Source of the DNA: Gnetum montanum
Lineage: Eukaryota; Plantae; Gnetophyta
NCBI GenBank assembly: GCA_015680685.1
Contig: MNCI01000614.1
Location: 660,248 to 724,247 of the forward strand
Direction: 5' to 3'
Length of the DNA stretch: 64,000 nt
This document shows, in pieces, positions 5,776 to 59,300 of the stretch. The translations under genes and the position numbers were made by a program. Every line of letters starts with the position of its first letter. The stretch's first letter is position 1. Below the pieces are notes generated by a model, which was given only the letters and a program-made list of their open reading frames with translations, was not told the origin of the DNA and did no database searches.

Positions 5776-5793
5776 TCCCTGGCAACGATGCCA
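5776..5793 (-). promoter_or_regulatory. Primer binding site (tRNA-Asp type)
   Basis: Minus strand TGGCATCGTTGCCAGGGA right after LTR end ...GCTCATCA; matches the Athila PBS consensus TGGCGCCGTTGCCGGGGA. Confidence 0.85.
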
Positions 5794-5794
5794 A

Positions 5795-15900: not shown

Positions 15901-15949
15901 GAGCAAGCTATTGTACCAACATCTTGTTAAAAATCCCAAGAAGGGTATC
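12947..15949 (-). mobile_element. 5'-truncated L1-clade LINE (copy A): RT, zf-RVT, extra C-terminal domain, 3' UTR, poly(A)
   Basis: RT QSGVVCAR/DQVILLQEILH...IKKAYNMMSWKAL; zf-RVT NIDPSYPLCMKEEETTNH; T8 run at 12948-12955; 11-bp TSD AAATAATGGAG at 12936-12946 and 15950-15960. Confidence 0.9.
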
Positions 15950-26552: not shown

Positions 26553-28124
26553 TACCCCCATGCCTGAATAAAAACTCATCCTCAAGTTCCTTACAAAATA
26601 TTAGGATGGTATGGAATTATTGACTCAAAATGGAACTAATGGGATGACATGTGAACGGATCATCATTACAAGATAAGACAAAACTAGTGTTCACGACAAC
26701 AAGAGTGAACACTTTATACATTTGATATCAAGCCTCATTTGGCAGCTGAGAAAGAGAGAGAGAGAGAAAGAAGTTTTGTTTTTGCCAACGCCAAGATTGT
26801 GCCTTTTTTTGCCTATCCATAAGCACGCCATCCATCTCGTTTTTTGCATAGTTGTTTCAGTGCCGATCCATTCCAAGTGTTTCCTCCAAATCCAATCCGT
26901 TGTTGTATGATCACCATCTGCACACACAACATAGTCTTTATATTAGTAAGGGTAAATGAATCATAATGCAATTGATACCTTGCTTTGGTGAAAGGTCCAT
27001 TGGTTGAGTTGTGATATGGCTGATACGGATTTGGAGGTATCATAGTGGTGACTACCGAAGCTATAAGGGTTAGGAGAAAATCAAAAATTTCAGTCTGGAC
27101 CCCCATGACTAAGAGCAAACCTTTGGTAGCGATAGAATGGAGAAAAAATAAAAAACAAGAAAGATGGAGAAAAAGAGACAAATATAACATCGATGAAATG
27201 GATTTCANNNNNNNNNNNNNNNNNNNNNNNNNNNNNNNNNNNNNNNNNNNNNNNNNNNNNNNNNNNNNNNNNNNNNNNNNNNNNNNNNNNNNNNNNNNNN
27301 NNNNNNNNNNNNNNNNNNNNNNNNNNNNNNNNNNNNNNNNNNNNNNNNNNNNNNNNNNNNNNNNNNNNNNNNNNNNNNNNNNNNNNNNNNNNNNNNNNNN
27401 NNNNNNNNNNNNNNNNNNNNNNNNNNNNNNNNNNNNNNNNNNNNNNNNNNNNNNNNNNNNNNNNNNNNNNNNNNNNNNNNNNNNNNNNNNNNNNNNNNNN
27501 NNNNNNNNNNNNNNNNNNNNNNNNNNNNNNNNNNNNNNNNNNNNNNNNGTCTAAGGGGTGTGCTTTGAATTCTCACTATTTTTTTTTGTTGTTTTATGTA
27601 TTTATGTGTGAGAACCACACCATGCAAAGACTTTGTTATTTTTATTTTCTTAGCTTCCCAATAATTGGGTAATGTCAGAACAGTAAGAAAACTCAAGAAG
27701 AAAACATCCAAGCACCCAAGAGAACGGCCAACATAAATGCATCAAGTTCCCTTGAACTCACACCCTTTTCAATCCTTGAGTCCTTCCTTAGTTTGAGAAA
27801 TGCCTAGTCACCGATTCATTGATAGTTCTTATTTAGAAAGGGACTATACATTTCCAAGCCAAGAGAGACTATAGAAATCTATGGATGTATGGATGAAGTG
27901 GACTCATTGTTTGCTATATCAAAAGAACCATACCTTAGTATCAACATCATGACTTAAAGGTAAAAACCAAACATTAGCAACCAATAGAAAAATAGTCCAT
28001 ACTATCATTAAGAACACTTATTGGTGACAAACTTAACAGAATGGATAATTCACACGCACACACACACAAGAAATGAAAAATTATGAATGATGTTGTAAAA
28101 TAAAAACAAGAAAATTTAAAGAAA

Positions 28125-28200
28125 TTTGTAAAACAAAAATGTGTAAAACAAAAATGTATAAAACAAAAATGTGTAAAACAAAAACGTGTAAAACAAAAAC
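28125..28200 (+). repeat. 15-bp tandem repeat (AAAACAAAAATGTGT-like), about 5 copies
   Basis: Visible directly; a related motif occurs at ~53095-53170 in element Z. Confidence 0.85.
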
Positions 28201-28289
28201 TTAAAAAGAACTGAGGGCCCCAAATGATTAGCATAGGTGGTTATCTGCCGAATGACTGAATGAAAAGGGCAGGATCCAAAATAACGAGT

Positions 28290-31200: not shown

Positions 31201-31565
31201 CTCTCCTACCTTGAGTCCCTTAAACGTTGTGCTATTTTGGGATGGTAATCCCTATGTCAAAATCACCTATAATGTACTCAGCATATAGCTGTGTCATGCC
31301 TATCTGTGCAAGAGCACGAAGAAGTATGTCAGGGATTGCCCGATCTAGAGGTAACACTATGTTATCTTGAAAATCTCTCCAACGCAATTGTTCATCCTGA
31401 TTGAGGATAAAGGTAAAATCAAGTATATTCTCATCATGATGAGTATATACCACCCTATATTGTTGAGGAACTGGTGGATTTTGGTTATGTATGTTAGACT
31501 ACTGACTACTTCTTGTATGATCCCTAGGTGGTGAAGTGCTCTTATGAGAAGAAGAAGAAGACATT
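28290..31565 (-). pseudogene. gag-protease of X (disrupted)
   Basis: ORF fragments 28420-28899, 29059-29424, 29847-30065, 30771-31190, 31232-31453; colinear with element A. Confidence 0.85.
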
Positions 31566-31687
31566 GTGTCTTATTCGGTGTGTTGATTAACTGTTATATA
31601 ATTTTTTTTAATTAACCCTAAGGGTTCGTTTAGGCTCCCAATGATGTGGATAATTTCCTATGTTCTACTTAGCGCACAAACACTTAG

Positions 31688-31705
31688 TCCCCAGCAACGG
31701 TGCCA
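31688..31705 (-). promoter_or_regulatory. PBS (tRNA-Asp type) of X
   Basis: Minus strand TGGCACCGTTGCTGGGGA adjacent to the LTR. Confidence 0.9.
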
Positions 31706-31706
31706 A

Positions 31707-32563
31707 TGATGAGTGGCAAGGTATCCCTATACTCAACCATATAAATATGAGCGTTACACACATGATCTGGTCGAACTCCGTAAACGAAGTGCCTACACGC
31801 CTTATGAAACACTTAAGGTTAATCATTTGTTGTCTTCCCAAACTTGTATTTGTCATGGTTGTATGGTTAAGTAAGTCTGAGGTATATGATTTTTATATCT
31901 TTTCTATTTTATCTCCTATGTTGATGAGGTAAAGGGTGAAGAGACTAATTACTAACTTTAACTAACTAACTAAGCCTTAATTAACCTAGTATCAGCATCC
32001 GTTTCCACTTACCATTCACACCATAATCCAATGCAACCTTGGTTACCAAACGCTACTCGTTGCTGGGATCACCGAGCATAACGCACATGCTCGAAGCGGT
32101 CATACTGAATGCACTTAACTACAAGAGAAGGGTTGAGAGAGATTTAATGACTAATAAAGCAATTAAATGATAAGTAATAAATAATAGTAAATAAAATCCT
32201 AATTAGCCTATTCCATGCACTGCAAGGGTTATCCAAGAAGTTCGTCTTTATTTTCGTACACAAAATTATGTTTAGGTACAATATTTGCTCGAATAAAGAT
32301 CCGTTCACTTTGGAGCTCCTATTGTAGGCACATGGAAATTATTTTATCTCTAGAGAGGTAAAACTACCAAAGTTTCGCTATGGTGTAGGCCTAGAATGAC
32401 AAACAAGGGAGAGCCACCTCTTATTTATAGATCTAACGGTGCACTGCGATATCGCGTATGTGATATCGCAGGGGAAGACGCAATATCACGTACACGATAT
32501 CATAGGGGATGCAATATCGTAGTGGATGCGATATCGTGGCCCATGCGATATCACGTCCCATCA
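31707..32563 (-). repeat. 5' LTR of X
   Basis: TGATGAG...CATCA, 857 bp; TATA-like CTATAAAT on the minus strand at ~32423-32430. Confidence 0.9.
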
Positions 32564-32654
32564 ACCATCTACAGTGAGATTCTACAGTGAAGCAAGATCA
32601 TCGAAGGAGTCGCATAAACAATGGTAGCAAAGTGGCTAAGCGCAAACAAAAACA

Positions 32655-33260
32655 GCAACACATGCTAGTTTCCATACTAGAAAACTCCCACTTTGTCAAC
32701 AAATACATGAAGGATAACCAAAAAAGCCTCCATGAACATCAATGTCTACTTGTTTTGGGACTCAACTACGTTGGAATTCAATGCCTACAAGGAAATGCGG
32801 GGTTGTTTTGCTGAGTGGACATGAGAAATCTATTGCTATTGCAAGTGCCAAACAAAATTCCATTGGGAGCAGGGCACTACCCTTCAAAGATTTAGTGGTA
32901 TTTGACGATCTAGTAATGTAGGGGACGAAGAACACATCTCATGCTCTTGGCAAAGCCCAAGGACTGTACATGAACATAGGACACAAATCACCTTTACTTG
33001 GCGGACATAGATCTATTAGTTATTGGCAGCACCAATGCCTTTATCTTTGATCATGGCATTGCCTGATGCATCACATCTTAGCTCCTTAGAATCAGGCTCT
33101 GTTTTTAACATGAATGACTACGGTAGGGATAAAATTTCTTATACATTTCTGATGGTGGTGGAAGGCTACCCAATTTGGCACACCAATCCAAACCAGATCC
33201 ATGGTTGGAAAGGGCTATGCTTGGATATCAAGAATGGCAATGACAGCAACAGGGCTAGGT
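32655..33260 (+). pseudogene. Captured host gene fragments in the 5' LTR of Y (ACC synthase, dirigent, ricin-B-like lectin)
   Basis: GIQCLQGNAGLFC*VDMRNLL; FKDLVVFDDLVM*GTKNTSHALGKAQGLY; IHGWKGLCLDIKNGNDSN. Confidence 0.75.
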
Positions 33261-34038
33261 GGTCGTCTTTTTGCAGGGAAAATCAACACCTACGTGGGGC
33301 ATCACATACACCTCTTTTGTAGCTTGCCTTAAAATTCATATTAATTTAAAAAATTAGAAAGCTAAGATTAGTAGTAGTACCAATTTTAACAAATTGGTAT
33401 TGGGTTTTGTAATACCTATATATTATTATAATATTTATTTTTAAACCTTGTTGCAATATAAATAAGGCATCATTTGTGTATGAATACAGGGGGGCATTCA
33501 TTAGGCACAAAAGAAGAGAACACATTGTACATACACATTAAAAAAAATTTCATTTCTTTTGAGAAAACAAGAGAGGATGAGTTGATACCAATGAATTCTA
33601 CATCGAATTGGAATTAATTATTCTTGAGATTTTTGTTGAAGATTTGTTGAGCCTTGTGGAAATTCTTATAATTCATCATTAAAATTGTTGCATTGTGGAA
33701 ACAGCAAGGTAGGATTGCAATTTAGGCAAGTCCTTTGTGATCTTCAATTATTATTTATAATTTCAATTTTATTTAATTATAAATATTTATTCTTGAATTT
33801 GTGATTAGAAGTTTGGATAAAAGTTTATAATTTTACTTCTAAGTGAGAGGCATAAGTGTGGAATTTAATTGAATTCAATTCTAACTATTTATTGTTTTAA
33901 TGATTTCTTTGACTTTTTAACTGCTCATCCATGGGATACGACTTGCAGGTTAGTCACAGACAAGGTGACAATATCTAGAATAAGGAAAAAATAAATTTTA
34001 AAGATATTCAGCACCAAATTTTTTCTGGCTCATCAATT

Positions 34039-34056
34039 TGGCACCATTGCTGGGGA
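34039..34056 (+). promoter_or_regulatory. PBS (tRNA-Asp type) of Y
   Basis: TGGCACCATTGCTGGGGA three bases after LTR end ...GCTCATCA (34035). Confidence 0.88.
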
Positions 34057-34499
34057 GGTTGGCAGAGTTAATCATCATCAAGGGTTCAATAAGCTTTATT
34101 TTTTTTATTTTTTTTATTTCTTCATGCTTTTTATTTTAGCATTTTATTTTTCTTTTATTTTTGTAAATTAAGAAATGGTTTCTTTTACTTGTTTTTCCTA
34201 TCTAAAGAAAAATAAAAATAAAAATAAACAAAAATCCTAGAAATCAGCTCCTCTTATCATACAACCAGCTAAAATCATTAAAAAAGTTGCAATTAAAGCT
34301 ATGATACTAAGAGCCATTAAATCAATTTGTAAATTTTTAGGAATGATAGCCCATGAATGTGCCAACGAAGAGTGTTCATGTTAAATGAAATCAACAAAGC
34401 AACCAAAGAAACCCACATGAATTCAACCATCTAGAAGCACTCTTAACCTTTATAGATGTACAAAAGTTAATCAAAATCAAAATAAAAAATAACCAATAT

Positions 34500-37400
34500 G
34501 ATCAAGATCTGATTATTCTTCCCCTCAAGAGACACAAAATCCCAACGAGAAAATGCAACCTAATTTTCCATAACTATCAACCCTCTATTTGACATTTCAA
34601 CATTAGCCATGAGTTCAACTACGAGGGTAGGATCTCAAGATTTAAATACTACCTCAATATCAATCTATGTGAGCACAATTGGAGGTATTACCCTACCAAT
34701 AAGCACTTTGAATATACAAACTCCACCAATAGTAACCTCATTACCAAGTCCTATAGTAACTCCAACAATAGCTTCAACTTATACTATGGGATCATACTCA
34801 CATCATGTACCTCCTGCATTCTCTTTAGGTCCAATTTCTCTCTCTTTTGGTAGTTTGAGCTCTAATGTTCAAGTTAATCAACCATACCTAGGACAAACCC
34901 TTGGAGAATTATTAAATCAAGGAACATCAATTATACCTCAAGGCCCATTGGTTTTCCCACAATTAGTTCTTGGGATGAGTTTAAGAACACTTTCCTACAA
35001 AGATTTCTTTCTAATGATAGGCTATACTCATTAAGAAAGCAATTAATGAGTTTCATGCAACATGAGAATGAGGACTATGAAAGCACCTTTGATAGTTTTA
35101 AAGGGTAATGTTTAAGGAATCCAAACCATGGCTTTCCAGCCCCATCAATTAATCCAAATCTTTGTAGAAGGATTACTACCTTATTGTAGGAAAAATGTTG
35201 ACTTTGCATGTGGGGGAAATATTTTAAATGTGACACCAAAAGATGGTTGGAGAATTATAGATTCATTAGTAGACCAAAGTAAACGTTGGCCAAAACCCAA
35301 CATTATGCAAGGCATGACTCAACAAATAGAACAATTAAATAGAAAAGTTGATGAGTAAACATGTGTTTTTTGAAAAACAAGCTCATGGAATCCAAAGTGA
35401 AGCATGCACCATTTGTGGTAGTCCCCAACATGACCAAATGACTTGCCCAACCTTGTATTATTCTTAAGAGGAAATACAAGAGTTAGCTAAGGCTTTTCAA
35501 CAATTTAAGAGCCAACCAACAATGAACTTTCCTCAATTACCATTCTACACACAACAACATCATCAAAATAATTTTAGGCCATTTAAGAATCTAACTAATG
35601 AACACATAGATAAACTCACCCAAAGCCTCACTTAATAGAAGAAAGTAGATAATTTATGAGTGAAACTAGGAGAAGATTTCAAGACTTAACTAGACATGAA
35701 TTACAATCTCAACTTGAACCTAATCCTACATCTCAAAGAAAAGTAAAAGATCAATTACATTACTACAAGGAGTGGAAAAATAATTGAACCTAAACCCCAA
35801 AAGAAGGTGATATTCCAAGAGGTAGAAACACAATAGTAAATAGAACCACAAGTATTCAATAAGAAAGATCAACCAACTATGGAAAAAGAACAACCATTAC
35901 TCTCTAGACAACCAATTTTACCTCATTTTCCTAAACAATTGTAAGAAAACTTCACAACCAAAGCCCATCTTGAAAAAATGTTTAGTGAACTATACTTGCA
36001 TATTCCTTTAGATTAAGTAGTAAAATACATGCCACTGTATGCCAAATACTTAAGGGAATTATGCACCAGGAGAAGAAAAGAAAAAATTCCTAAACAAGTT
36101 TATTTAGTTGATAATCTTTCTCAACTTATACAAAGACATGAAATTCCTAAATACCAAGATCCAGGAGTTCCTACCATTCCAATCAAGATAAATGGACAAG
36201 AAATTAGGAATGGCCTATTGGATTTAGGAGCTAGTATTAATATTATGCCTCTTGAAATGGCTAGATAACTAGATATAGAGGATATAAGAAGAGTAAACAT
36301 GACAATATCATTAACTGATGGTTCAAGTGTAACACCCATAGGAATCATAAAAGACTTAATAATAAAGGTAGAAAAAGGAAAATACCCAATTGATTTTGTA
36401 GACCTAAAAGTGAAAGATCCTAATTGTTTTCCCATTATATTAGGTAGACCTTCGTTAGCAATGACTGATGTAGTAATTAATTGTAGATCTGGCCAGCTTC
36501 AACTCTCATTTGCAAATCTCACTTTTAAACTAAATGTATATGATAAGGTAAAAGAAGATCATTTAAATATAGACTTGAGGCAGGTAAGAATGCTCTACAC
36601 TCTACCCACTTCAGCAATGGCACAAGCTAGGGAAACCTTAGTGTTAAATAATTTTGAGGAAGGACCTTTAGACCCCTCAACTACGAAACAACAAGATTTC
36701 CTTGACCAAATTCTAAATTTAGGGTCTGAAAATATTGCAGAAATAATTCAACCTACACATAAATATTCCTTAGATCTTAAAGAATTACCTTATACACTTA
36801 AGTATATTTTTCTAGACAAAAATAAGTCATTAATAATAAATTCCCAACTTACCAATGAGCAAGAAAATAAACTATTAGAAATCTTGTGTAGAAAATTTGA
36901 GGCATTTGCATGGAGCTATGAGGACCTTCATCAAGGAATCTCACCCAACATCTACCAACATCGTATCTATCTATAATACAATGTTAAACCAAAAATAATT
37001 CCCCCAAGATGAATTAATCTAGCCTTAAGAAAATAGTTAAAGAAAAAATTTCAAAACTTTGGAAAGGAGAAATCATTTATCCAATAGTAGATAGTGAATG
37101 GGTAAGTCCCATTACTATAGTTCTAATAAAGGTTGGAAAATGGAGAGTTTGTGTAGACTATAGAAGATTAAACCAAAACACAAAAAAAGACCATTTTCCA
37201 TTACCATACATAGATCATATTCTAGAAAAAATAGGACATGAATACTACTATTTTTTGGATAGATTTAGTGGTTACAATCAAGTAGCTATTTCCCCTGAAG
37301 ACCAACATAAAACAACCTTTACATGTCCTTATGGAAATTTTTCTTATAGACGACGAATGCCTTTTGGCTTTTGTAATACACCAACCACTTTTTCGAAGAG

Positions 37401-39579
37401 CCATGATCTCAATATTTTCGAATATGTTAGAAGACTATGTTGAAGTCTTTATAGATGATTTTTTAGTTTATGGGGATACTTATGGTGAAACCTTACAACA
37501 TCTTGAACATGTCTTAGATAGATGTATAGATAAAAATTTAAAACTAAGTTGGAAAAAGAGTCATCTAATGGTTACAAGTGGTGTAGTATTAGGACATGTT
37601 ATTTCTAAAGAAGGGATAAGAATGGATGATGAGAAAATAAGCGTCATATCTACACTTCCAGATCCAACCAATTTAAAGACTCTTTGATCTTTTTATAGGA
37701 CATGTTGGATATTATAGAAGATTTATCAAAGACTTCTCAAAACTTGCTAAACCAATATATATGCTCCTAGAAAAGGATGTTTCATTTGTTTGGACCAATT
37801 ATTGTCATGAAGCATTTTTGGAACTAAAAAGATGAGTAACCACAACCTCTATATTAAATGCACCTAATTCGGATTATCCATTTCATTAAATGTATGATGC
37901 TAGTGACACAGCAATAGGGGTAATTTTGGGACAATACATTGATAATAAATAAAGAGTGATTTATTATGTGTCCAAAAGTTTAGACCAAGCCCAAGTAAAT
38001 TATACAACTATAGAAAAAGAACTATTAGCCATTGTATATGCTCTAGATAAATTTAGACATTATTTAATTGGATATAAAACTAGAGTATATATTGATCATT
38101 CAGCCATTAAATTCTTAGCTTCTAAAAAAAATAGAAAATTCAAGAATAATGAGATGGTGTTTATTACTCCAAGAATTTGACTTAGTTATTATAGATAAAA
38201 GAGGTAGGGAAAATGTAGTAGCAGATAATATTTCTAGGTTAGAAACTCCTAATGAGAATCAAACAAAAATAAATTTTCATGATGAATTTTCTGATGAACA
38301 ACTTTTTTCTACAAAGAAGAATCCTTGGTTTGTTGATATAGCCAATTATCTAGCTACTATGAAAACTCTTACCAATTGGATTAAGGAAGAAAAAAAAATA
38401 TTTCTTACATAAAATATCTAGATACATTTGGAGTAGTCCATACCTCTATAAATTATGTAAAGATAATATAGCAAGAAGATGTGTGGTTGAAAATGAACAA
38501 CAAGAAATTCTACAAAAGGGTTTATGATGGTTTAGGGGGAACCCACTTTGATAGTAAATGTACTACCATCAAAATCCTTCAAAGTGGATTTTATTGGCCC
38601 TCCATTTTTAAAGCTTCATCTAAGTATGTGCAAGAGTCTAATAAATGTCAACAAATGGAAGCTAAAAGAAAAAGACATGAAATGCCCTTAAAATCCATTT
38701 TAATAAAAAAACCATTTGATGTGTGGGGTATCGACTTTTTAGGACCATTTTCACCATCTAATGGATGTTAATACATTTTGGTTTGTATTGACTATGTTAC
38801 TAAATGGGTAGAAGCAAAAGCCACCCCAACAAATGATGTAAAAGTAGTTGTAGCATTCCTTAGGGAAAATATTTTAACATGCTATGGAACTCCACGGGCA
38901 ATCATTAGTGATCAGGGAACCCATTTTGTCAATAAAATCATGAAAAAATTCCTTAAGTCTTGTGGTATCCAACATATAATAGCTATTGCCTATCATCCAC
39001 AAATAAATGGCTAAGTAGAGAATGCTAATAAAATTATCTTAAATATATTAACAAAAACTGTATGTACCAAAGGGAAGGATTGGTTTAAAAAATTACAAGA
39101 TGCACTTTGGGCTTGTAGAATTACTTATAAACCAAGTTTAGGTTATTCAACTTATCAATTGGTTTATGGTAAGTTATGTTTATTACCAGTTGAACTAAAA
39201 TATCAATTTTTATGATTAACCCAACAACTCAATTTTGATGAAGACATGAACCAAGCCTCTAGAATTAATCAACTTCATGAACTTGACGAAATGAGGCTAC
39301 ATGCCCTAGATAAGCAAAGAATTGTAAAAAGATAAATGAAAACATTACACAATAAAAATATCTTTAAAAAATAATTCTCTGTAGGTGAAAGTTTTATTTT
39401 ACAATATGAGATTACATAAATTTCCAAGAAAATTAACAACTAGGTGGAAAGGCCCTTATTTAGTTGTTCAACCTCATGATAATGGAAGTATCCTCATATC
39501 ACCTATCGAAGATTCCTCAACAACGTTCCTAGTCAATGGTCAAAGACTTAAGCTATATCATCAACACCACATTGAGTAA
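34500..39579 (+). pseudogene. gag-pol of Y (gag, protease, RT, RNase H, integrase), many stops and frameshifts
   Basis: LLDLGASINIMP; DHFPLPYIDHIL; EVFIDDF; NYTTIEKELLAIVYALDKFRHYL; PFDVWGIDFLGPF; GTPRAIISDQGTHF; RWKGPY...VNGQRLKLY. Confidence 0.93.
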
Positions 39580-42139
39580 CCTAAAGAAGACAAATTAATA
39601 GAAGTAAGTGATCCAACTTATCCTACTACAAATGATTTACATGAAAACCATTCATTAGAAGTCCTAGCTCTTAAATATACCCCTAAACTAGACTCTTTCA
39701 TCATCAAATAAATTAATAAAAGAATTATATTCAGTCTACAAATTTTACCTTGCAAAATGTAGAGGTCAATAGAAAATTCTATTGTGAGTTGGGACTATAA
39801 AGAATTCAGTAGCATCATGTTTGAAATGCAAAGGAGAAGAACAACTCCTCCTACCTTGAAATAGGTAGGTTTAAACCCAAAATCCAACTAAGGGTGAGCC
39901 TTAGACTAATAAGTGTCTTAAACATAATAAATTTCATTGTTTCTAAAACAATATTCTTTAAGTACATTGTTCATAAATTAAGGTAGCTACATAGCTTAGT
40001 TTAAGGTAATGTTTATCGGTGTTTAGTTTCTATTAAATACTTACTTGGATGAGTCATTAAGGTGGAAAGGGTGTGTTATATTGGACCTTGTTTCTTCGGT
40101 AGTAAAAGGCATCTATCTATATTAAACCATGTGAGAAACCCTTATAAAATGAAATTGGCTCCCACAAGGACCTCATGATTTAAGTCAATTAGATATTGAA
40201 TTTCTTGCAAAAGAAAAAAAGAAAAAAAAAAGAATTAAAAAAATGAATGATGAGAAAAAAGAGAGTAAAAAGATAATATACAATGCAAGAAATAGTTAAA
40301 ACAAAAAAAAAATAATAACCCCACAAGAACCTTCAATCTTGAGTTGAGCCTCACTCCCACAAGAACCTTATAGTTGGGGTGATGCTCCAAGCTCACAATT
40401 TCAAGCATCCTACAAGAACCCCCTTCTGTAAGCAAAGTGTTTAAAGATTAGGCACCAATCATCAATCTACTCTTGATGCCCCTACCTTAGAACTAGGATA
40501 TAACATTGGTAGCAAAAGTGTCACTCATCCACAATTAGTATGTTAATGGACATCTTCACCTATAATCATTCCTTTCACTTTGTTATGTAGTTACTTTACT
40601 TATGTTTCTTTGTACTTTTTAGACTATTTTTTTCTTTGTTTTTGTTTTGAACTTCTCATATTATTATTTTCTTTTATTTACCTAATTTTTACCTTTTGAT
40701 ATTCCTCTTTTTCATTTCTACGTTATCATACTATTTTTATTCTACATGGTCATCTCATTTGACTAGTGGTATTTTTGTGCATGAGTTTTCTTTGTGTTTT
40801 CCATCATGTCTTCCATAGGTGTTAGTAGTCAAGATCCCTACTATGGTAGCCAATGATGGATACTAACACTTGTTCACCCATTGCCTTTGGTTTCCTCTTA
40901 GTTTGAATATATAAAACCTAGGGCAATTCTTGCTTTTGGTATATCCTTTGATCATGTTTTCTTTTAATAATTTATCTTTGCTAATTAACCTAAGTATGTT
41001 ACATACCTTAGCTTAATTTTGGGGGTGGGAGGGTGTGTGTGTGTGTGTGTGGGGCCCATGGATAACCAAGTAATAAAGGATATTATAGTAGGGTATAACT
41101 AAATTGGAAGCTAAACCAAGAACAAGTTAGCAAATGAGTAAGATGTAAGTAATGTATCTCGAATCCTTAAATCATAAGAGAGGTCTAACCCTTGAGGTTA
41201 TAAGAAATTCGTACACCTAATGAAGCAAACCTTGTGAGGTGATGTTAAGCCCAAGAAATCTTAGGTAGGGTCTTCCTAATCGAGTTCTATGTGGACTCAT
41301 ATCCAAGAATAAGAATTTATCACCAAAAGAAGAATAATCATATATACATAATAAATAATTAATGTTATATTAAGACATTATATATACAATTACATAAACC
41401 ATATAAACATTATAATTTATATGAATATTATATATATTATATAATTTATATAAATATCCTANGTATATATAAATATTAAATTATCAACACTTTCTTATTA
41501 TTTCAACTTTTCTTGTCTTGGAAGAAACTACCATCCGAATTTCACCACTTTGTTTGCACATTAATGAATTTTGAATACGGTTTTGTGTTTTGAAAGGAAA
41601 TTTGAAATTGGGAATTTTATAATCGTTGTGAATTTGGGATGGTATTTTAGACAAGCCACTGACATGTTACGATGGGCCCAATAGTGGAGCAAGGTTGCTA
41701 ACGCTAATGCAATTGTTGTAGTAGTTGTTAGTTAAGCAGCTGGCAACTCTGCCAAAATAGATCTCACGAGCAAACAATTTGAAGGGGAGAAAGAGGAAAA
41801 TGCAGTAGCAGCAGTAGTTGGAGCCAAGAAAGGCAGTAGGAATCCCCCATCATTATCATGATCTTTATCAAGAGCGGCGACATTGGTTGCCCTGCACGTT
41901 TCGGGTGAGCTGTTTCTGAGCGCAAACAGATGGATTCTTCTTATTACTTGTACACATATGCAGAACAGTTGCAATCGAGGATGACGAGGACGACGACTCC
42001 GCTGATCTGTATATCGTAAAACCTCATCACTATCACCGTGGGAACCGCAAGGACCATCTACAGTGAGATTCCACAGTGGAGCAAGGTCATCGGAGGAGTC
42101 AGTGTAAACAGTGGTAGCAGAGCCGCTAAGCCCCACCAG

Positions 42140-42325
42140 AAACAGTAGCACATGCTAGTTTCCATACTGGCAGACTCCCACTTCGTCAGGAAATACATGA
42201 AGGAAAACCAAAAAAGCGTCCATGAACATCAATGTTTGCTTGTTTTGGGACTCAGCTATGCTAGAATCCAATGCCTACAAGGCAATGCAGGGTTGTTTTG
42301 CTGGGTGGACATGAGAAATCTATTG
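42140..42325 (+). pseudogene. ACS: Captured 1-aminocyclopropane-1-carboxylate synthase fragment in LTR
   Basis: MLVSILADSHFVRKYMKENQK...LLVLGLSYARIQCLQGNAGLFCWVDMRNLL matches the conserved ACS region (L.SML.D..F...Y..EN..RL...GI.CL..NAGLFCWVDMR.LL). Confidence 0.85.
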
Positions 42326-42555
42326 CTGTTGCAAGTGCCAGACAAAATTCCATTGGGAGCAAGGCACTAGCCTTCAAAGATTTAGTGGTATTTGACGATC
42401 TGGTAATGCAGGGGCCAAAGAACACGTCTCATGCTCTTAGCAAAGCCCAAGGAATGTACGCAAACATAGGGCACAAATCGCCTTTACCTGGCAAACATAG
42501 ATCTATCAGTTATTGGCGGCACCAATGCCTTCAGCTTTGACCATGGCATTGCCTC
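42319..42555 (+). pseudogene. DIR: Captured dirigent-protein fragment (internally deleted) in LTR
   Basis: AFKDLVVFDDLVMQGPKNTSHALSKAQGMY resembles FG.lvVFDDp.t.gp...S..lGrAQGmY; in another frame DLSVIGGTNAFSFDHGIA resembles dlsVvGGTG.F..ArGiA. Confidence 0.75.
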
Positions 42556-42659
42556 ATGCAATCACATCTAAGGTCATTAGAATCAGGCTCTATTTTTAGC
42601 ATGAATGACTGCAGCAGGGTTAGAATTTCTCATACATTTCTGTTGGTGGTGGAAGACTA

Positions 42660-42750
42660 CCCAGTTTGGCAGATCAATCCGAACCAGATCCACGGTTGGA
42701 AGGGGCTATGCCTGGATATCAAGAATGGTAATGACAGCAATAGGGCTAGC
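42660..42750 (+). pseudogene. Possible ricin-B-type lectin fragment in LTR
   Basis: QIHGWKGLCLDIKNGNDSNRA resembles the I.G..GLC.DV..G...G motif of ricin-B repeats; short match only. Confidence 0.5.
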
Positions 42751-43517
42751 TTGTCATCTTTTTTGCAGGAAAAATCAACACCTATGTGGGGCATCACATA
42801 CATCTCTTTTGCTGCTTCTCTTAGAATCCATATTAATTTAAAATATTAGAAAGCCAAAATTAGCGGTACCCATTTTAACAAATCAGTATTAGGTTTTACA
42901 TATATTATTATATGTATTTATTTTTAAGCCTTGTTGCAGTATAAATAAGGCATCATTTGTGTATCATTGAAGGGGGCATTCATCATGCACAAAAGGAGAG
43001 AACACATTGTATATATACTAAAAAAAATTTCATTTCTTTTGAAAAAACAAGAGAGGAGGAGTTGATACCAGTAAATTCCACATCAAATTGGAATTAATTG
43101 TTCTTGAGATTTTTGTTGAAGATTTGTTGAGCCTTGTGACAATTCTTGTAATTCATCATCAAAATTGTTGCATTGTGGAGACAACAAGGTGGGATTGCAA
43201 TTTAGGGAAGTCTCCTTTGTGATCTTCAATTATTATTCATAATTTTAATTTGATTTAATTATAAATCTTTATTCTTGAACTTGTGATTAGAAGTTAGGAT
43301 AAAAGTTTATAATTTTACTTATGACTGATAGGCATAAGTGTGGAATTTAATTGAATTCAATTCTAACTATTTATTATCTTAATGATTTTTTTAACTTTTT
43401 AACCATTCCTCCACAAGATACGACTCGCGGGTCAATCACAGACGAGGTGACAATCTCTAGAACAAGGAAAAAATAAATTTTAAAGGTATTCAACACCAAA
43501 TTTTTCCTAGCTCGTCA

Positions 43518-45535
43518 GTGGGCAAACTAGGGATTCTCAAATTCATGGACATGATCAGAATGGGACATCAATAGCTAAATGGGATTAACACCAACCAGAC
43601 ACAATGGATCTAAATTATGCACAACAAATATCAACACTAGATAGTGGCTCCTCATGATTCGTTACTTTGGTGCTCACTTTTCCATCATGCGTAGAACATG
43701 ACACAGCTGGGTTTGATTACAGTACCATCTTGCCTCATTATATGCATCAATATCCTACAATGTCTAGTTGGTTGCCAATCTAGCATGGTAGATTACCAGA
43801 CAAGGTAAAGATGTTCTTGTGGTTAGTTAACCATGTTGCTCTTCCTATGCAAGTTGACTTGAAGAGACCAAGTTTGAACTTGGACAACAAGTGTCCCTCA
43901 TGTAATCAACTACCTAAAACATAGTGCCACTTTGCTTTTGAATGCACTTTTAGTAGGGAAACATGGTACATTGTTGTAATCTCCCCACCCATACATTTTG
44001 ATGATGACTCGAAGGCCACTATGATATTGTGGTCTTTGTGGTAGTCACACAATCACCTTATTTTTAGACAAGTGGCTTTATTACCACCTACGCAAGTTGT
44101 TGCAGAGGGAGTGAGGTTGTGACAAGAAGCTACAGTTGGAATGGTGGTGACTCCAACTTTCAAACCTTCCTACGCTAAGTTTTAGGAAATGCTTGAGTTG
44201 TGGGACCTAGTTATGCATGTTAGGTGGGCTAATTTCCTCCCATTGCTAGTGGGAGATTTGGCTTTGTCAAATAGTGAGTTTTTGCTAATTGGAAAAATGA
44301 CTGTACCACATTTCATGGGGTTCAAATTGAACTCACTGAAGAAGCATTGGTGAGAGTTCTAGGTGTGCTAGTCTCTAGCGAAGTTGTGCTACCAATAAAC
44401 AAAGGCTTGCAAGATGCAAAGGCCTTCTTCACCAAGCCTATGCCACAAACTACAAGCCAACAAGTGCCTAAATCAACATTGCCCTCACTATGGCAACATG
44501 TAGTGGAGTTGATTGAATGTTTTATCATTTAGACTGGTAATGTTTGAAAATTATAGGGGGCTTACTTTACACTCCTTAAATGTTTGATCATGGGACAGAT
44601 GATGAACATTCTTAGGTTTTTTCTGAACTCCCTAAGATGTCAGTGATTAGGGAGACCCTCAGGTCTTATTCTTTCCTTATGGAGGGTGGTTGGGTTGGCA
44701 CCTATGATGCAGAATCCTATTCAAGCCTATAGCTCTATCTATATTAGATAGAGGTAGCCATAGGTGGTTGTTGTTGCTCAAATGCCTCTAAGTTGGCTAG
44801 TGGTGGTGCTAGGAGAAGCCCAACATTCTAAGGAGGAAATGATAGAGACTGATGTTGGGTAAAGATCAAAAGGAAGTTAGGAGCTATCCACCTTGTAGAA
44901 TAGGATTGATGTGGCTATGGAAGAGGCCACCTCTTAGGCATGGGAAAAGGAGTGAAGGATATGGGAGGCAAAGTGGGAAGCTAGGAAAGAGGCCTTTTAG
45001 TGGTAGTTGTAATAGATGGAGCTCCAGCACCAAGAAATGGTTGAGGTACTTCAATGGTAAAGGGAAGTGGAGAACATGACTATTAGGGCTATGTTGAAAG
45101 AAGGACTCCACAAAGGATTGAAGAAAGAGCTTCAACAAGAGGAGCTCTTTAGAAAAACGCTAGAACATGAAGAGAAAATTCAAAGGGAAAATTGAGCAGA
45201 GGGAGAATGAAGTGTTATGACAGCAACTTGATCAAGCACATGAGCAAAACACAATCACCTAGCTATAGGAGGGGAAATGATCCTATGTCAAAATGCAAAT
45301 CAATCATAACTCCTCCTGGCAAGAGCTCAAATGGTGCATCTAGCTTGCATTGGTAAAACTCCATTTGAATGGTAGGGGCAATGTGCCTACCAGGGTGTGT
45401 AAGGCTGAGGCCTTTAAGATTTTTTAGCAAGTAGCTACCTTTGTGGATTTTGAGGAACATCATGCTCTACTGGACACTCTCCACTTGCAACCGAGGCCTA
45501 ACTGCATATGCGTGCATCTACCTTAGCATTTCTGA
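43518..45535 (+). pseudogene. L1 ORF2 C-terminal part: zf-RVT followed in frame by an extra domain and coiled coil
   Basis: LPDKVKMFLWLVNHVALP...CPSCNQLPKT*CHFAFEC; ILWSLW*SHNHLIF continues in frame to LWDLVMHVRWANFLPLLVGDL. Confidence 0.85.
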
Positions 45536-46479
45536 TGGGAGGGGTGTTTTGCTTTTGCTATTAGTTTTTTTATTCTTTTGTGTGTCTATTTCAAGTATGC
45601 CCTACTTGGATGGTTGGGTGTGTGTTTTAACTTTTTCTTTTTGCTTGTGGTTGAGTGTAGAAGGGACATGAGAATGTGCTTTTGGTTTTGGTGTGCATGG
45701 TTGGGAAAGAAAGTTTTCCAGGTCAGTGAATGGAGAGAGGTTTGGGGGTTGACAACCATCCCAATTTTTGGGTTTTAGATAGTTACATTGGGGTTTCTCT
45801 CCCCTAGTTTTCTTGTAAATATACCACAATTTTTATTTTTTAATATACTCCTAAAAAGTTTCTTAAAAAAATACAAGGGACAATCATCATAAAAGCACTA
45901 AAAATTCTGATTTTAAGCTAACAAATTAAGTGAACTATATGAGCTCAATTACAAAATAAAAAGGGAAGACAAAGATTGAAATGTATCAAGCTTGACCACC
46001 ATGTTGGATTAACATGGTTCCAAACTTTTGAAATCTTTATTTTCAAATTTTACAACCCTTATGTTTTCACATTGAGAAAAATGTAGGCTTGAACAAAGAA
46101 CCATTTAACAATGAGTTGGGACAAGGAAACTCTCTTAATAATCTCCCTAAAACTAATTATGAAAATGATCAACAAACAAAACATGTACTTTTCATTATGC
46201 ACAAGATACCAAAAATCATCAATATGCATAATTTCTTTTTATTTATAAATTAGTACTTAATGGGCCCTTTGGCCATCTAGATGGCATACTCCAAGTCCCT
46301 CCAACCCTACAACATATTGTAGCCCACACAAGAAGAACACTAGAGTTAGATAAATTGCTGGCAAGTAATACCATGAAGCTCTTCCAAGGACTAATACCTT
46401 GTAGCCTACACAAGAATTCACTAGTTTTGGATAGAATGATGAGGGGCATTCCTTAATAATTATCACAAAAACATTAAAT

Positions 46480-47480
46480 ACGTAAGTTCATGGTAGAAAA
46501 TGCTAACTCATAAACCCAATGCATGTATGCCGAATATCAAATTTATGACTTCTAAAAGATCATTTGCATGACTCACAACTCACAAGAAATCCCATATGCC
46601 CTATAGAAATAATCCTAAACTTGTCCAAACTAAGATAAAAAACACCTCTTGATAGTTAGAATGAAACAATGGTTTAGAGTACATACCTTTATGAATGGGC
46701 TAATTTGTTTGAGAAAGAAGAACACACTTCAAGCTTGGATTGTTATCCAATTAGCAACCTTAATGATTAGGTTAAATTTTTTCCCAACTAATAGCCTCAA
46801 GAATCAAAAAGCAAGTCATAATAAGAAGCCCAAGGTGCAACCAAAAGACTTAAGGAAAACTAGAGAATAACTATCCCTAGCATCAACTATAATAGACTCA
46901 AAATCAAGCACTAATAGCACCAAGGTCAACCTCTTATGTCTTCAAAAAAAGCTCACAAAGATCACTAAGATAGGTCTAATACTTGGTCCAAAAGGCAAGG
47001 TAGGAATAACCTCACACATGCTCCTCTCATCCTCTCCTCTATTCCTCACACTAAACTAGCAAAGTCTTTCCTCACTTCTCAAAATGTGAAAATATGAGAC
47101 TGCCCTCTATTTATAGGATGAAGGAGACCCCAAGGCTTAGGCAAATACTTGTGCGTAAACGTTTACACAATGGGTAACTATTAGGCATCACATCCTTCAA
47201 AAATCTCTTTTTTTTATTCATGTCATGATAACCACTTGACTTGAACAAGCGAGCTTATGAGAAAGTAGATATGTGAGAGTGGAAACACTCAAGAGAGTCA
47301 CATACCAAAAATTTATAATATATACAATAACTGTTGATGGAGAGTGTTTGAAGAAACACATATTTCTTTTTGGAGAGACTTTGGGTGTAAATTTAAAATA
47401 AAAAATATGCACATCATATCCACATATCCCAAAAATATGGGGAGAGAGCATCTTCCCTCATCTTAAAAATGGGGGTTACA
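46480..47480 (-). mobile_element. Probable LTR fragment or solo LTR (boundaries uncertain)
   Basis: Minus strand starts TGTAACCCCC at 47480; CCTATAAATAGAGGG TATA-like motif at ~47103-47117 followed by a GA-rich leader. Left end not identified. Confidence 0.45.
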
Positions 47481-47559
47481 GTCCCCCTTCCCACTCATCG
47501 CACTCACCAAAATTCTCCTAGAGAATTTAGAAAATAAGAAAAATCAAGAAAACAAAACA

Positions 47560-50165
47560 TGTGTTTTATCCAAACCCAAGTCACAACCCAACAAAAGATG
47601 CCCCACCCACAAACAACCTAAAGACACATTGGTAGCAGCGAGCACTTGTAGCAGCATTGCTCTTGGCTTTGAACTATATCCAAAATAGCCCTATTATGCT
47701 CGGTGGCAACAAATGTTGTTTCTTGCTAAAATTCTTTAAAGCTCACTTCCTTCATTGCACACTCCATGGCACTTTCCTCTCCATCTAGATGTAGCTTTTG
47801 ACTTTGATGTTGGATATGCCTCTAGAGCACAGCCCAAGGCACACTTGGTCTGATGTCTAGAATGATGTAGGGGCATCTCCCCTCCTATATCCATGAACAT
47901 GCATGATCTTCATGGGCTTGGTCCAATCTCTCCTAGATCTTTGCCTCCTCCTACTCCTCTTCCTCTCACCATTGGCACTGCTTCCTTGCCTGCTCCTCTT
48001 AGAGCCTAGCCTTTGCCTAGGGCTCTTCTCGAATCTCCTATTCGAGCTCATATTCCAGCTCCTATCTAGCTACCACCTCTACCAAGTCATGATACATGCT
48101 TTTTTCCCTCACTACCTCCTCATAGTAGTGAGTTAGCCATTCTAGCTCCTACTGGAACTACTTCTCACATTGTCTCATTTGCTTTGCCCAAATCGTGCAC
48201 TCTTCCATCCATCCACATTATATCATCTTTGATCCTATCAGTAGCCCCACCATCCTTGAAGTTTCCCCTTCTTCATCCCTCCTCCCTAACTTAGTTAGAG
48301 ATCCAACCCCTTAAGGTCCCTCCAATCCTTCCCAAGGATGTGATGACTTCCCCACTTCAGACTGCCCAACAACCCCCAATCCGATCTCCCCTCCGAAGCG
48401 GCCTCCTCTAACTTACTTGAATTAGTAGAAATGTCAAACACAAATGGTGGAACACACTACCTTCATTGTAACTTATACATGGCCTGCACTATTGGAGCCC
48501 TAGGTGGCACTGGGGCCCCTCTTGGTGGTGATCATTCCCTCACTTCCTACCAAAGTGTGAGAATAAGCCCTAAATGGATTCCCTCCCTCCTTCGATGCAA
48601 CACCTCCAAAATGTAATGAGGCAGGTTCACAACAAACCCCCTTTGAAGGCAACATAGGAAGCTAAAATGCACCCCTAGCAACTTCCACACATTGCCTGAG
48701 TGAATGAAAAATTGATCCACAAGCATTGTAGCACCTAGCCACATAGGTTCCAAAGCCAACTTGGTGACCTACTTACTACTTGTCTTGGAAACCATCCTTG
48801 GGAAAAACTCTAGTGCATCCTACAACCCTCTCTCCCATGACATCACATTTTTCCCTTTCATTGGTACCTATACATACTTGGCGATGGTAGCCTTGATGAG
48901 CTCAATTCTCACCCCCCAAAATAAAGTAATGTGCCCAGGCCAATTATTATAAAATATCCCATCATCCAAGTCAAGGTCCCCACAAAGTTGTTCCAACATT
49001 GAGGCCCAACCCACCTTGTCCACCAGATGCCAAATAATGGGATTAGCTTGATAATCTTCACAAGATAGTTCAAAAGTTAGGGTCATCCCCATCGTAACTT
49101 GTGTTTCCCTCCATGCCCAAAAACCTTCAGTTTCCACCTACGTCAGTAATGGTGGAGTAATGTCCTAAAAAATTTAGTAATTTCTAGTTATCCATAGCTA
49201 CCAAAGTATTGTTGCAACAAGTGAGTCTCTGTCCAATGTAATCAACAATGGAATAGCTTGCCACACCCACATCGAATAAGTACATTACCATGCAAAATGC
49301 TCCACCATCTCCTCCCCCAATATGTAAAGGGGACATGTGGCATTCACCTATAACCCCTGTCTTTTTAGCATGTTCCGCATAGGGAGAGCACCATGCCCAA
49401 TCAACCATACAAAAATTTTAATTTTTTCAGGGAGCTTTCCCAATCATAATTGCTACCACCCCTTGACAGCAAGGTACTTATGTTTAATTAACTACATCAA
49501 TTACTTATTTAGGAGCCCCAACGGTAAAATCCTCCACATGTGTGATACTAAAGAGTGCCAAACATTTGAATCACTGCATGATGCCTTCTAATACTGATAC
49601 TTATGATGCATAATTTGAATCCACTGGGTCAAGTAAAGGTCTTGATCACATAACTACCTCAGCAATCCCTGAAGCCCCATGGCTAGGACATCAACAAAAT
49701 GTAGCAATCCCAAACCTCCCCCCTACTTTGATCTGTCCATGATAGCCCATGCAACCAAATGCATCCAACCATCCCCTTTACCCCCCAACCACATGAAATT
49801 CTAAATAATGCAGTTAATTTTCTCCATAACTTTAATTGGAGTGGAGGAAGTAGATGCCATGAATCTAACCATAGCCTAAAGAACCAATGAAGTTAGAACT
49901 AACCTCCCTATATGGCAAAGAAACTGAGTAGTTTAGTGACTAACTCTTTCTAGCATTCTTTTGATAAGGCTTTCCTAGACACATCTTTTATGCCAATCAT
50001 ACAATGGTAATCCAAGGTAGGTATCTTCCTTGGACCCCAATGAAACCCCTAGCAACTTGAAAATTCTCCTCTACACCATCTACTCAACATTAAGGAGATG
50101 CACCATGGATTTACCTCTGTTGACCTCTAGTTCAATCTTTTCGGCCATTCGAAGCAGAGCTCAGT
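47560..50165 (-). mobile_element. 5'-truncated L1-clade LINE (copy C): end of RT, zf-RVT, extra domain
   Basis: TYLGLPL; GRLVLTSLVL; NFMWLGG...HLVAWAIM...GGGLG; LPEKIKIFVWLIGHGALP; ORFs 48868-49137 and 48547-48759 are homologous to copies A and B. Confidence 0.85.
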
Positions 50166-51229
50166 CAACAATAATAACTTAAGGAACTATAACCCTAGTG
50201 AATAGAAACACATTTTAATTGTGTTAAATGTATTGTTATTACTAAACTAGAAACATAATTGTATAATGGTATCGTAAATTCAAAACATTTTAATTTTTAA
50301 GAATAATAAACATAATAGTTATAGTGTAGTATTTGTTAATATTAAGCATAACTGTAACTTTATAACAAGAGAACATATGCTTATTTAAATTGTAGTTTCT
50401 TAAGGAAAAAATCTCATGCCAACTTTAGGTCAAGAGGTAGATGATATTGTGTGGCCATTATCAAAAGATCTCAAACAAGTAGTTATCATGGTAGCATCCA
50501 CATTATGAAATAAAGGAAGGAATGTAGATCTCGTTCTTATGAAAAATGATCAAAATGGGATTTTTTATTGGGCTCTCAATATTTAGCATTTCTATCATGT
50601 GCCAGTAAAGTCCATGATTATTTAAAAATAAGTGCTTTCTTATTACTATCATATATAATCCAAATGAACAAGGTTACTACTTAGTGCATTGTGTTATTCC
50701 ATCACATGTTGCATAAAAAAAATATTATCCTCTTTAGGTTCTCTAACTAATAAAGGAGCAATGCTTAGGTTCCAAGGCACTCAGGTTATTACTTTTGTGC
50801 TCCTCTAACTAGCCATGAGGGTGATTCTTTCCACACATAAATATTAGGGTGAGAAAAGCATCGAACTTACTTTTCAAGCTAAAGTGGTATCTACAAAACC
50901 TTTGATAAAGTTATTGTCAACTGTTTAACCCTAAAGCATGTTGACATGGGTGGCATGATCCACTTGAGTCCACACAGTTGAGAATAGATACAAGCTTTTA
51001 TTCTATTATTTGTAATAAGGGTTTGAATATTATTGGACACTTTCATTGTCACTTGAGACAACGACATTTATAGTAATTGGATTTTGACCTATCTCTGTAG
51101 GTTTTATATTTTGTTATTAGATGTTTCATGTTGTTAGAAATTGTTTACTAGTTGTTTTGATTATTTAGTAACTACATAATTTTCTATTCCTATAATGGTG
51201 GAAAAACATGATCATGGTAGCAATGTATA

Positions 51230-56399: not shown

Positions 56400-59300
56400 T
56401 TTAATTGCAATGCATATTGATTTAGCTATTTCCTACAACTACAATGTAAAAAATTTTCTACATTTTGCTACACATGTTAAAGCATAATTTCAATTTTCCT
56501 AACATAGTTAAATATCAAAAAATTTTAAATTTTAATTTTTCATTGTAGTTGCACTTAATACATTAGAGTTTTACAAGTTGGAATTCTAATACTTTGACAC
56601 TTTTTACAAGTTATAACTCACATAAGTTAACTTATATGTTGGATTTCTCACTTCCATAAGTTAAGTTATAGTTTAGATTTCTCACAAGTTGAGATTTCCA
56701 TAAGTTAGCTTATACATTGGAATTTTTACAAGTTGAGATTTCTTAAAAGTCAATATTTCTACAAGTTATACATTGGAAATTTAAGCAAATTTTCTTCTAA
56801 AAGAAAGATATCATAAGAAGTCTACATTTCCACTTGAAATTCATATATAAGAAATTATTTTTGAACATGCTCTAAGTTTTTCCAATTATGTGTGGAAAGA
56901 GAAGTTCCCCAAGCAACACATCCATATAATAATACAAGTTGGACAAGACTTTGAAAAAGTTTCATTTTGATTTCCCATGCCAAAATTTGTTTCATGCTAT
57001 AATTATTTCTTAGAGAAAATAGAGCTTGCATGTCACTTAAAACCATTTAAGCAATAAGGGTACTCTACTTATAATTACTAGCAAATTCAATTCCCATATA
57101 TTTAAAAGATTCACATATATCAAGCCATTTTCTCTAAGGAAAATATTATAATTTCTATTTCTAATACCACAAACTAGAATTTTAGTCTTATCAATATTAA
57201 CTTTCATACCTAAATGGTNNNNNNNNNNNNNNNNNNNNNNNNNNNNNNNNNNNNNNNNNNNNNNNNNNNNNNNNNNNNNNNNNNNNNNNNNNNNNNNNNN
57301 NNNNNNTAAGATTATCTTCAATAAGAATGTTAACCATCTTATAGATTCTTTAAGTAGTAGAAAAGAGATCTAGTGGAATATTAACAATATCCAATCTCTT
57401 CCAAATTTTATCTACAGTCACAAAATCATAAGCCTTAGAGAAATCAACAAAGAAAATGAAGATTGTACGATTGGGCTTTTTTGCTTTCTCTACACATTAC
57501 TATAAAGTTATTAGATGGTCTATAGTAGAATGATTCCTTTTGAAGCATGATTATGACTGAGCATGAAGACCTTTCATTTCTATCCATGAACTAATTTTAT
57601 TTTCCAAAATAGTACCCAAAAGATTAATGAAAATTGAGTTAATTGCAATCATTCTATAATTATTAAGATCTATCCTATCTTCTTTTTTGAAAAGAAAGAC
57701 TACTAGACTAGAACACTAAGAACGATCCGAATCATGTAGAAGCCCTTTATTAAGAAGAGTGCAAGTTGCTTTTCACACCAATGAACCACCCAATTTAAGA
57801 AGCTTTGCATATAATTCATTAACATCAACACCTTTCCTAGAAGATAATCTTTGAATTCCTATATAAATGTCATCAAGGAAAAACTCAAGAACACTAGAGT
57901 TGTCTTGCATAGTTTGGGAAGCCTCTTGATAGAAAAGTTCATTGAAGAAAGTTTGAATAGTAGACAAGAAAAAATCCCAACCATGTTTCTATCTATCTTA
58001 GAATAAATTCCAAAAGCTCTTTGGATTTGAGTGAAGCTCAAGAATCATTTTTTCCTGGTCTTCTTTAATGAACTTCATTTTTTGATCAAACAAATAACCT
58101 TTCTATAATTCTTTAGCATTGAAACATCAAAACATGAAACTATAACATCTCTACATGCTATCAAACAATCCACATCAAATCAAGGTTTTCTACAAGTAGG
58201 CTTCTTCTTAATATGCACTTGAGTAGTTGTAGACAAAAGAACATTAGTCAAATCTACCTCATTGTCACTATTGACCAAAATATTAAGCACTCTTGTTTGA
58301 AAATCCTAATGAAAGTCTTCTGGGAAATGACAAATTCTACATTTCTTAGAATGAATATATCAAATTGAAGAAAGAATAATGAATTTTAGGTAATGATGAG
58401 AAGATGCTAGAAATTTTCACCCACTTGAAAGTTTTTCACTACGTCTATATTATCATGAGTAAACAAGAAAATATCAATGCAAAAGTTACCTTATTATCAA
58501 ATAAAAGTGAAATGAGAAGAGGAAGGAAATTTCTTGATGCCATTAAGGATTAAAAAATTAAAGGAACAACCTAACTCTAAGAAATAAATACCTCAATGAT
58601 TTATACTATAATTAGTAGATAATCTTTTGTAAACTAAATAAATCTCTTCACTAAATTTTAAGTAAGAATTCCAATTAAGCATTTGAATCTAACTTTTTCT
58701 AATACAAGAATTAAAATTCCCACAAATGAAAACTTTACCAAGCTTGGAGAATTTTGCAACATCTTGACCCAAGTACTGAAAAGGATGCTCTCATGAAAGA
58801 TTAGCAAAATTGTAGATAGAAGAATCCCTTGAAGCAAAATAACAAAAAGTAATATAAAGAACCTCTAAAATTCCTTGAACTTGAACCCAAAAATATTGGT
58901 TATTATCATCAACTTTGTGCACCTTAATGAACTAATCTCTAGAATTCTTAATTAAATAAGCAATGCCACCCAAAGGTCTATCCATAACCTTGGAACAATT
59001 ATTTCTAATAGAAATGATATGAAATCCTTGAATAGACACAATCAAAGAATTTTATTCTTCCCAAGTTTCAACAAAAAGAAAATAGATCAAAATAACTAAA
59101 GAAATGACTAGTATCTAAAGCAACAACTTTATTAGCCAATAAGCCTTCAACATTAAGAAAGTCACATGTAATAGAATAAAAGTCCTATTTTGGGGGACTT
59201 TCCCTCTCTTTGATTATTATAACATATTTATAGTTTAAATAAGAAAATTTACCTTCAACATGAGCTTGTTTTACATTTTACCATTATTCCTACTTTTTTT

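Follow-up and report, generated by a model that had tools for sequence, protein, structure and literature searches.

The second open reading frame (ORF2) of long interspersed nuclear elements (LINEs) is usually regarded as encoding an endonuclease, a reverse transcriptase (RT) and a short cysteine-rich tail, and to our knowledge documented gains of further ORF2 domains are few. The plant mobile domain (PMD; PF10536), found in Gypsy and MULE elements and in the host MAIN/MAIL1 proteins, is a transposon-borne accessory domain whose biochemical role is unclear. Among LINEs, an archaeal-like RNase H follows the zinc-finger region in some plant L1 elements, according to the account given in PMC4686597 of the work of Smyshlyaev et al. 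(2013), and in the R1/TRAS LINEs of insects a tobamovirus-like SF1 helicase lies at the C terminus of ORF2, where foreign domains are tolerated (PMC4686597). Here we describe a 64,000-nucleotide stretch of DNA from Gnetum montanum (assembly GCA_015680685.1, contig MNCI01000614.1, positions 660,248 to 724,247 of the forward strand), referred to below as the window, in which three decayed LINE copies of apparent L1 type, designated A, B and C, carry a conserved coding region directly after the zf-RVT zinc-finger region. The tail so formed is a real, once-functional C-terminal extension of L1 ORF2. As in the plant L1 elements with RNase H, a domain has been gained at the C-terminal end of ORF2, after the CCHC/zf-RVT region, but here the domain is not an RNase H and the tail, of about 500 amino acids in at least three parts, is far longer. 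The insect R1/TRAS elements likewise possess an extra C-terminal ORF2 domain; however, LINE clade, host and domain all differ, and the family of the donor is recognizable from sequence there, whereas it is not in the present case.

The window consists of plant DNA (mean GC content, 35.6%) in which decayed transposons are densely nested. Copies A (12947–15949) and C (47362–50203) lie on the minus strand, and the 3′ part of copy B (43518 to approximately 45871) lies on the plus strand. Copies A and C are 5′-truncated, and all three copies have A-rich 3′ ends. Exact target-site duplications (TSDs) flank copy A (11 nt, CTCCATTATTT) and copy C (10 nt, ATGTGTTTCT), in both cases adjoining the A-rich end on one side and the 5′ truncation point on the other, and each pair encloses the extension; a search for a TSD of copy B found none. 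In copy A the similarity to another LINE RT (19477–19833) begins in tblastx at 15949, the very base that adjoins the TSD. We consider it probable that these three insertions share an extension that is colinear among them, was held under constraint, is enclosed by the TSDs in A and C and was fused into ORF2 of their active ancestors. The parts of the three copies are listed below, with the evidence for each in brackets.

43518–43744, plus strand: copy B, C-terminal remnant of the RT, directly after the 3′ long terminal repeat (LTR) of a nested gypsy element (the LTR alignment stops at 43517; tblastx, 43599–43718 with C 49629–49510)
43745–44041, plus strand: copy B, zf-RVT region with the motif W..W..(R/H)N..IF at its end (PF13966, E 2e-6; tblastx to A and C)
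44042–44682, plus strand: copy B, linker and conserved extension domain, with seven in-frame stops and a frameshift at about 44279–44281 (tblastx, codon positions, unshared stops)
44683–45193, plus strand: copy B, charged stretch rich in E, K, R and W, frames broken (translations; a short match of 44914–44988 to A 13630–13556)
45194–45523, plus strand: copy B, second conserved C-terminal block (KLHLNG ... FKIF ... ALLD), J-domain-like by motif only (tblastx to C 47959–47630)
45524–45871, plus strand: copy B, 3′ untranslated region (UTR) and A-rich end (sequence; the final 50 nt or so can be aligned to the 3′ ends of the other two copies)
47352–47361, minus strand: copy C, 3′ TSD, ATGTGTTTCT (exact 10-nt repeat with 50204–50213)
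47362–47629, minus strand: copy C, 3′ UTR and A-rich end (sequence; end alignment with A and B)
47630–47959, minus strand: copy C, second conserved C-terminal block (KLHLDG ... FKEF ... RAILD) (tblastx to B)
48550–49233, minus strand: copy C, linker and extension domain, in frame with zf-RVT, with seven stops and no frameshift (tblastx, stop comparison)
49234–49515, minus strand: copy C, zf-RVT region (PF13966, E 6.5e-4; tblastx to A and B)
49516–50203, minus strand: copy C, 5′-truncated RT remnant (tblastx to A 15321–14855)
50204–50213, minus strand: copy C, 5′ TSD (exact repeat)
12936–12946, minus strand: copy A, 3′ TSD, CTCCATTATTT (exact 11-nt repeat with 15950–15960)
12947–13837, minus strand: copy A, charged stretch and what is left of the C-terminal block, then 3′ UTR and A-rich end (tblastx, translations, end alignment)
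13838–14491, minus strand: copy A, linker and extension domain, with frameshifts near 14250 and 13945 (tblastx, stop comparison)
14492–14773, minus strand: copy A, zf-RVT region (PF13966, E 4e-4)
14774–15949, minus strand: copy A, 5′-truncated RT remnant (tblastx, 15949–15593 with 19477–19833)
15950–15960, minus strand: copy A, 5′ TSD (exact repeat)

Similarity among A, B and C was not detected at the DNA level by blastn, yet at the protein level ungapped tblastx matches run straight across the junction between zf-RVT and the extension (B 43745–44221 with A 14740–14264, and B 43964–44281 with C 49269–48952). The similarity continues into the extension, where B 44281–44682 matches C 48951–48550 over 134 amino acids at 35% identity and further colinear matches join B 44278–44595 to A 14238–13921 and C 48972–48658 to A 14256–13942; the ungapped matches at or after the junction span 105–134 amino acids. 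Scored on the extension alone, the pairs reach 92 bits (B–C, E 8e-29), 66 bits (B–A) and 52 bits (C–A), against a maximum of 24 bits in 100 shuffles. The region common to the three copies, some 210–230 amino acids long, begins immediately after zf-RVT, and similarity also spans the linker that leads from the W..W..(R/H)N..IF motif to the core of the domain and is the least conserved part. Reading across the junction is frame-continuous in every copy. Copy C keeps a single frame from 49908 to 48550, copy B changes frame once, at about 44279–44281, and copy A does so near 14250 and again near 13945. The initial annotation, whose quoted translations are indeed present in the sequence, had the frame running on without a frameshift; this is true of the junction in every copy, whereas the extension as a whole is free of shifts only in C, the shift in B having been concealed by dots in the translation.

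The pattern of decay and the pattern of conservation in the extension both bear on its history. Each copy has about seven or more in-frame stops within the extension, and no aligned stop position is common to two copies, the linker included. At least ten of the stops face TGG, CAA or CAG in other copies, as expected of C-to-T and G-to-A transition decay of methylated cytosines; such decay has been recorded for Welwitschia transposons (PMC8275611). The similarity of the linker, together with the unshared stops, leads us to regard the ancestral ORF2 of these copies as having included the extension. In the core of the extension, nucleotide identity between copies is 0.49–0.52 at first, 0.57–0.65 at second and 0.36–0.38 at third codon positions (chance, 0.25), and although the alignments behind this comparison and the dN/dS estimates were chosen by amino-acid score, which somewhat inflates the periodicity and counts to that extent against our interpretation, the signal remains far above chance. 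The zf-RVT region and the RT tail follow the same pattern, and the NG86 method gives a dN of 0.59–0.65 for the extension with dS saturated (at least 2) or undefined. The codon-position pattern indicates that most of the divergence between copies arose while the protein was under constraint, in lineages that were still active, and the past purifying selection proposed at the outset is thereby upheld. Support likewise extends to the proposed in-frame position of the additional conserved coding region after zf-RVT, and this region lies inside the retrotransposed unit, as the TSDs of A and C attest.

Assignment of the three copies to L1-type LINEs, as first proposed, is supported by sequence features. 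PF13966 (zf-RVT) is matched in all three (B 43784–43921, E 2e-6, exceeding the gathering score; C 49351–49443, E 6.5e-4; A 14618–14749, E 4e-4), and the TSDs, A-rich ends and 5′ truncations agree with such an origin. Upstream of copy B, a plus-strand LINE gives a weak RVT_1 match (19588–19932, E 6e-5, below the gathering score), and the RT remnant of copy A is 44% identical to 19477–19833 over 119 amino acids in tblastx. The final 50 nt or so of the three copies do align at the DNA level (45815–45871, plus strand; 12947–13005 and 47362–47420, minus strand), their common pattern being a T-rich run followed by TCC(T)AAAAA.TTTCT.AAAAAAA. This pattern may represent a 3′-end recognition or polyadenylation element, with chance playing some part because the region is AT-rich.

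The upstream part of copy B is cut off from its 3′ part by a gypsy-type LTR element (25141–43517). Older plus-strand LINE parts at 19477–19833 (RVT_1) and 24042–24239, interrupted by a copia fragment and an assembly gap (24346–25103), probably belong to copy B. Further upstream of the LINE RT, a C..C..GH....C zinc-knuckle-like pattern was recognized by eye at 17282–17506 (plus strand) with no Pfam hit, and is possibly a remnant of ORF1 of copy B. The gypsy-type element has LTRs at 25141–25759 plus 32564–34035 and at 41464–43517 (87–88% identity), with protease, RT and integrase-like pieces at approximately 36269–39576, and its 5′ LTR is split by a second LTR element (25797–32519) whose own LTRs are 87% identical. 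The copia-type fragment within the upstream LINE occupies 21032–23976 and gives an RVT_2 match (E 3e-38) at 23207–23626. Elsewhere, 2372–6211 and 28296–32106 share 3.9 kb at 71% DNA identity and represent two related internal regions of LTR elements, one of which has aspartic-protease signatures at 2866–3291. Runs of N, marking assembly gaps, lie at 6498–6653, 24346–25103, 27208–27548 and 57219–57306, and the second of these conceals the junction of LINE copy B with the inserted LTR element.

The tail does not end with the first domain. The initial annotation had described a single extra domain, and that domain is present, but the tail continues beyond it, through about 150–170 amino acids of charged sequence, to another conserved block about 110 amino acids long, and reaches approximately 45523 in copy B. 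The charged stretch of copy B is rich in E, K, R and W and appears coiled-coil-like, a judgement made by eye only. The second block, recognized by the tblastx match of B 45194–45523 with C 47959–47630, is followed by the 3′ UTR and the A-rich end; it contains KLHLDG and FKEF...RAILD in copy C and KLHLNG and FKIF...ALLD in copy B. The tripeptide within the first of these motifs is HLD in C (CAT CTA GAT) and HLN in B (CAT TTG AAT), each of which can be reached from HPD by transitions, and we take the FKEF...RAILD flanks to resemble helix III of a J-domain. Searches of Pfam and the PDB with the stop-free pieces of this block, which are just 20–35 amino acids long, gave no match to DnaJ (PF00226).

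Relatives of the first domain are exceedingly scarce. Scanning five stop-free pieces of the extension against Pfam with hmmscan at E up to 1 gave no match to PF20167, PF03078, PF10536, RVT_3 or RNase_H, although the pieces were only 34–91 amino acids long and a remote member of PF20167 or PF03078 could have escaped. A profile built from the N-terminal and central portions of the extension, compared with 1.84 billion protein representatives, returned two proteins at E ≤0.001, P0001 and P0002. The former, a tandem-repeat protein, was rejected as spurious. The sole real relative, P0002, is a 91-amino-acid ORF from a Welwitschia mirabilis transcriptome that matches copy C with an E value of 1e-10 within the window, and further homologue searches with one copy-B piece and two alignments yielded nothing besides it. 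That a single real relative was found among 1.84 billion representatives indicates that annotated plant L1 ORF2 proteins do not ordinarily end in this tail. In a protein atlas, the top neighbours of P0002 are unnamed Streptophyta clusters (0.94) and, of the named clusters, PF20167 (0.89) and PF03078 ATHILA (0.88) come closest, both scores being under the 0.9 from which the tool itself counts a neighbour as more than a lead; seven of the ten best named hits belong to one family or clan. The same search with the C-terminal half piece gave no usable match. In a literature search, with Repbase and Dfam outside its scope, no LINE came to light whose tail is PMD-like, Transposase_32-like or formed by a J-domain.

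Several accounts of the extension other than fusion within ORF2 have to be weighed. The main alternative is that it was a separate downstream gene (ORF3), unfused and lying in the ORF2 frame by chance. For this it can be said that an intact copy is found in none of the three cases, that the linker is the least conserved part, that P0002 is called from a methionine aligning inside the linker and that the prior chance of a common frame is 1/3. However, single ungapped matches cross the linker in both B–A and B–C, no stop position in the linker is common to two copies and a conserved ATG context was not seen, and we therefore regard an unfused ORF3 as quite unlikely. Simple juxtaposition, in which LINE fragments adjoin, or sit inside, a different repeat to which the conserved coding region belongs, might be entertained in a window so densely nested with transposons, but it has next to nothing to recommend it once three copies without DNA similarity are seen to share the same order and spacing: in A and in C a single pair of TSDs takes in everything from the RT through zf-RVT and the extension to the A-rich end, and neither an A-rich end nor any other boundary separates zf-RVT from the extension. 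TSD-enclosed units without such a boundary exclude nesting or chance adjacency.

The position of the extension, identical to that of the archaeal-like RNase H of plant L1 elements, invites the question of whether it is a strongly diverged RNase H. This is very improbable, as neither the pieces nor P0002 matched RVT_3 (PF13456) or RNase_H (PF00075), no RNase H was returned from the PDB, in which such chains are many, the conserved D-E-D-D pattern was not seen in the alignments and the low-confidence model of P0002 appears to open with four helices, not with a three-stranded sheet. The phrase ‘in place of RNase H’, by which the initial annotation had characterized the domain, is thus borne out. 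Its further identification of the domain with the Athila-type PF20167 protein is, in contrast, unconfirmed, in that Pfam gave no match and the named atlas neighbours stay below 0.9. The strict form of that idea, according to which the first domain is Transposase_32 (PF20167)/ATHILA ORF-1 captured specifically from an LTR retrotransposon, does have points in its favour. The nearest named atlas neighbours of P0002 and the family or clan shared by most of its named hits agree with the motif resemblance noted in the initial annotation. An Athila element of sunflower is reported to have PF20167 in an additional 3′ ORF, the domain being described there as PF03078-related and of mixed alpha/beta structure (PMC11728184), a report that makes the idea of kinship coherent, and the low-confidence models seem compatible with that description. 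Set against this, HMMER gave no match, even at E up to 10 for P0002, the LTR elements of the window itself contain no PF20167- or PF03078-type ORF that could be found for comparison, and the Athila/Tat proteins are separate extra ORFs of LTR elements, not joined to the RT polyprotein. Moreover, related domains also occur in MULE transposons and host genes, which means that the donor cannot be named even if the homology holds. Capture from an LTR element in particular therefore seems unlikely to us. The broader proposition, of remote kinship between the first domain and the Transposase_32/ATHILA ORF-1/plant-mobile-domain group, stands appreciably better, at a little short of an even chance.

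Fusion of the extension into ORF2 of active L1-type ancestors thus remains the explanation we prefer, and it has to be held against a number of results that tell the other way. Since no copy is intact, the single continuous ORF is reconstructed, not observed. The L1 assignment is based on zf-RVT, RVT_1, the TSDs and the tail, with no phylogeny behind it, and Pfam detected no endonuclease domain on the upstream pieces of copy B. Neither P0002 (E up to 10) nor the extension pieces matched Pfam, and PDB profile searches with the extension returned nothing. The AlphaFold models are of low confidence (pLDDT 58 for P0002 and 48 for a copy-B piece), suggesting helices, then a beta hairpin, then helices, and a wide fold search of the P0002 model with VIA-align, with Z at most 2.5, was uninformative.

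Our working hypothesis is that A, B and C would be defunct insertions, each derived from a separate sublineage within a single L1-clade group of LINEs, and that the three sublineages would have diverged long ago. Ancestral ORF2 would have run past the zf-RVT (CCHC) region with neither a stop nor an RNase H, continuing without a change of frame into a globular domain some 210–230 amino acids long, then a charged stretch of about 150–170 and a block of about 110, before the 3′ UTR and A-rich end. The module would have been translated within the ORF2 protein (ORF2p) and may have acted in cis in an accessory binding or assembly role in the LINE ribonucleoprotein, its partner being nucleic acid, chromatin or protein. 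If the first domain does belong to the Transposase_32/ATHILA ORF-1/PMD group, tethering of the particle to chromatin or an anti-silencing activity could be envisaged. The final block may be what remains of a J-domain for the recruitment of Hsp70, which we regard as a lead only. A more specific three-part reading, of a gymnosperm L1 lineage whose ORF2p combines a Transposase_32/PMD-like domain shared with Athila/Tat elements, a coiled coil and a J-domain, is in our view doubtful; were it true, a non-LTR element would share an accessory domain with LTR elements and carry its own Hsp70 co-chaperone.

Protein-level constraint maintained through the divergence of several sublineages implies that the element needed its tail. 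The near absence of the first domain from protein databases also indicates that the transposon proteins of gymnosperms are poorly sampled for protein families. The tail offers a handle on what limits the spread of LINEs in large, heavily methylated gymnosperm genomes, for which ribonucleoprotein assembly, access to chromatin and escape from silencing are the candidate limits.

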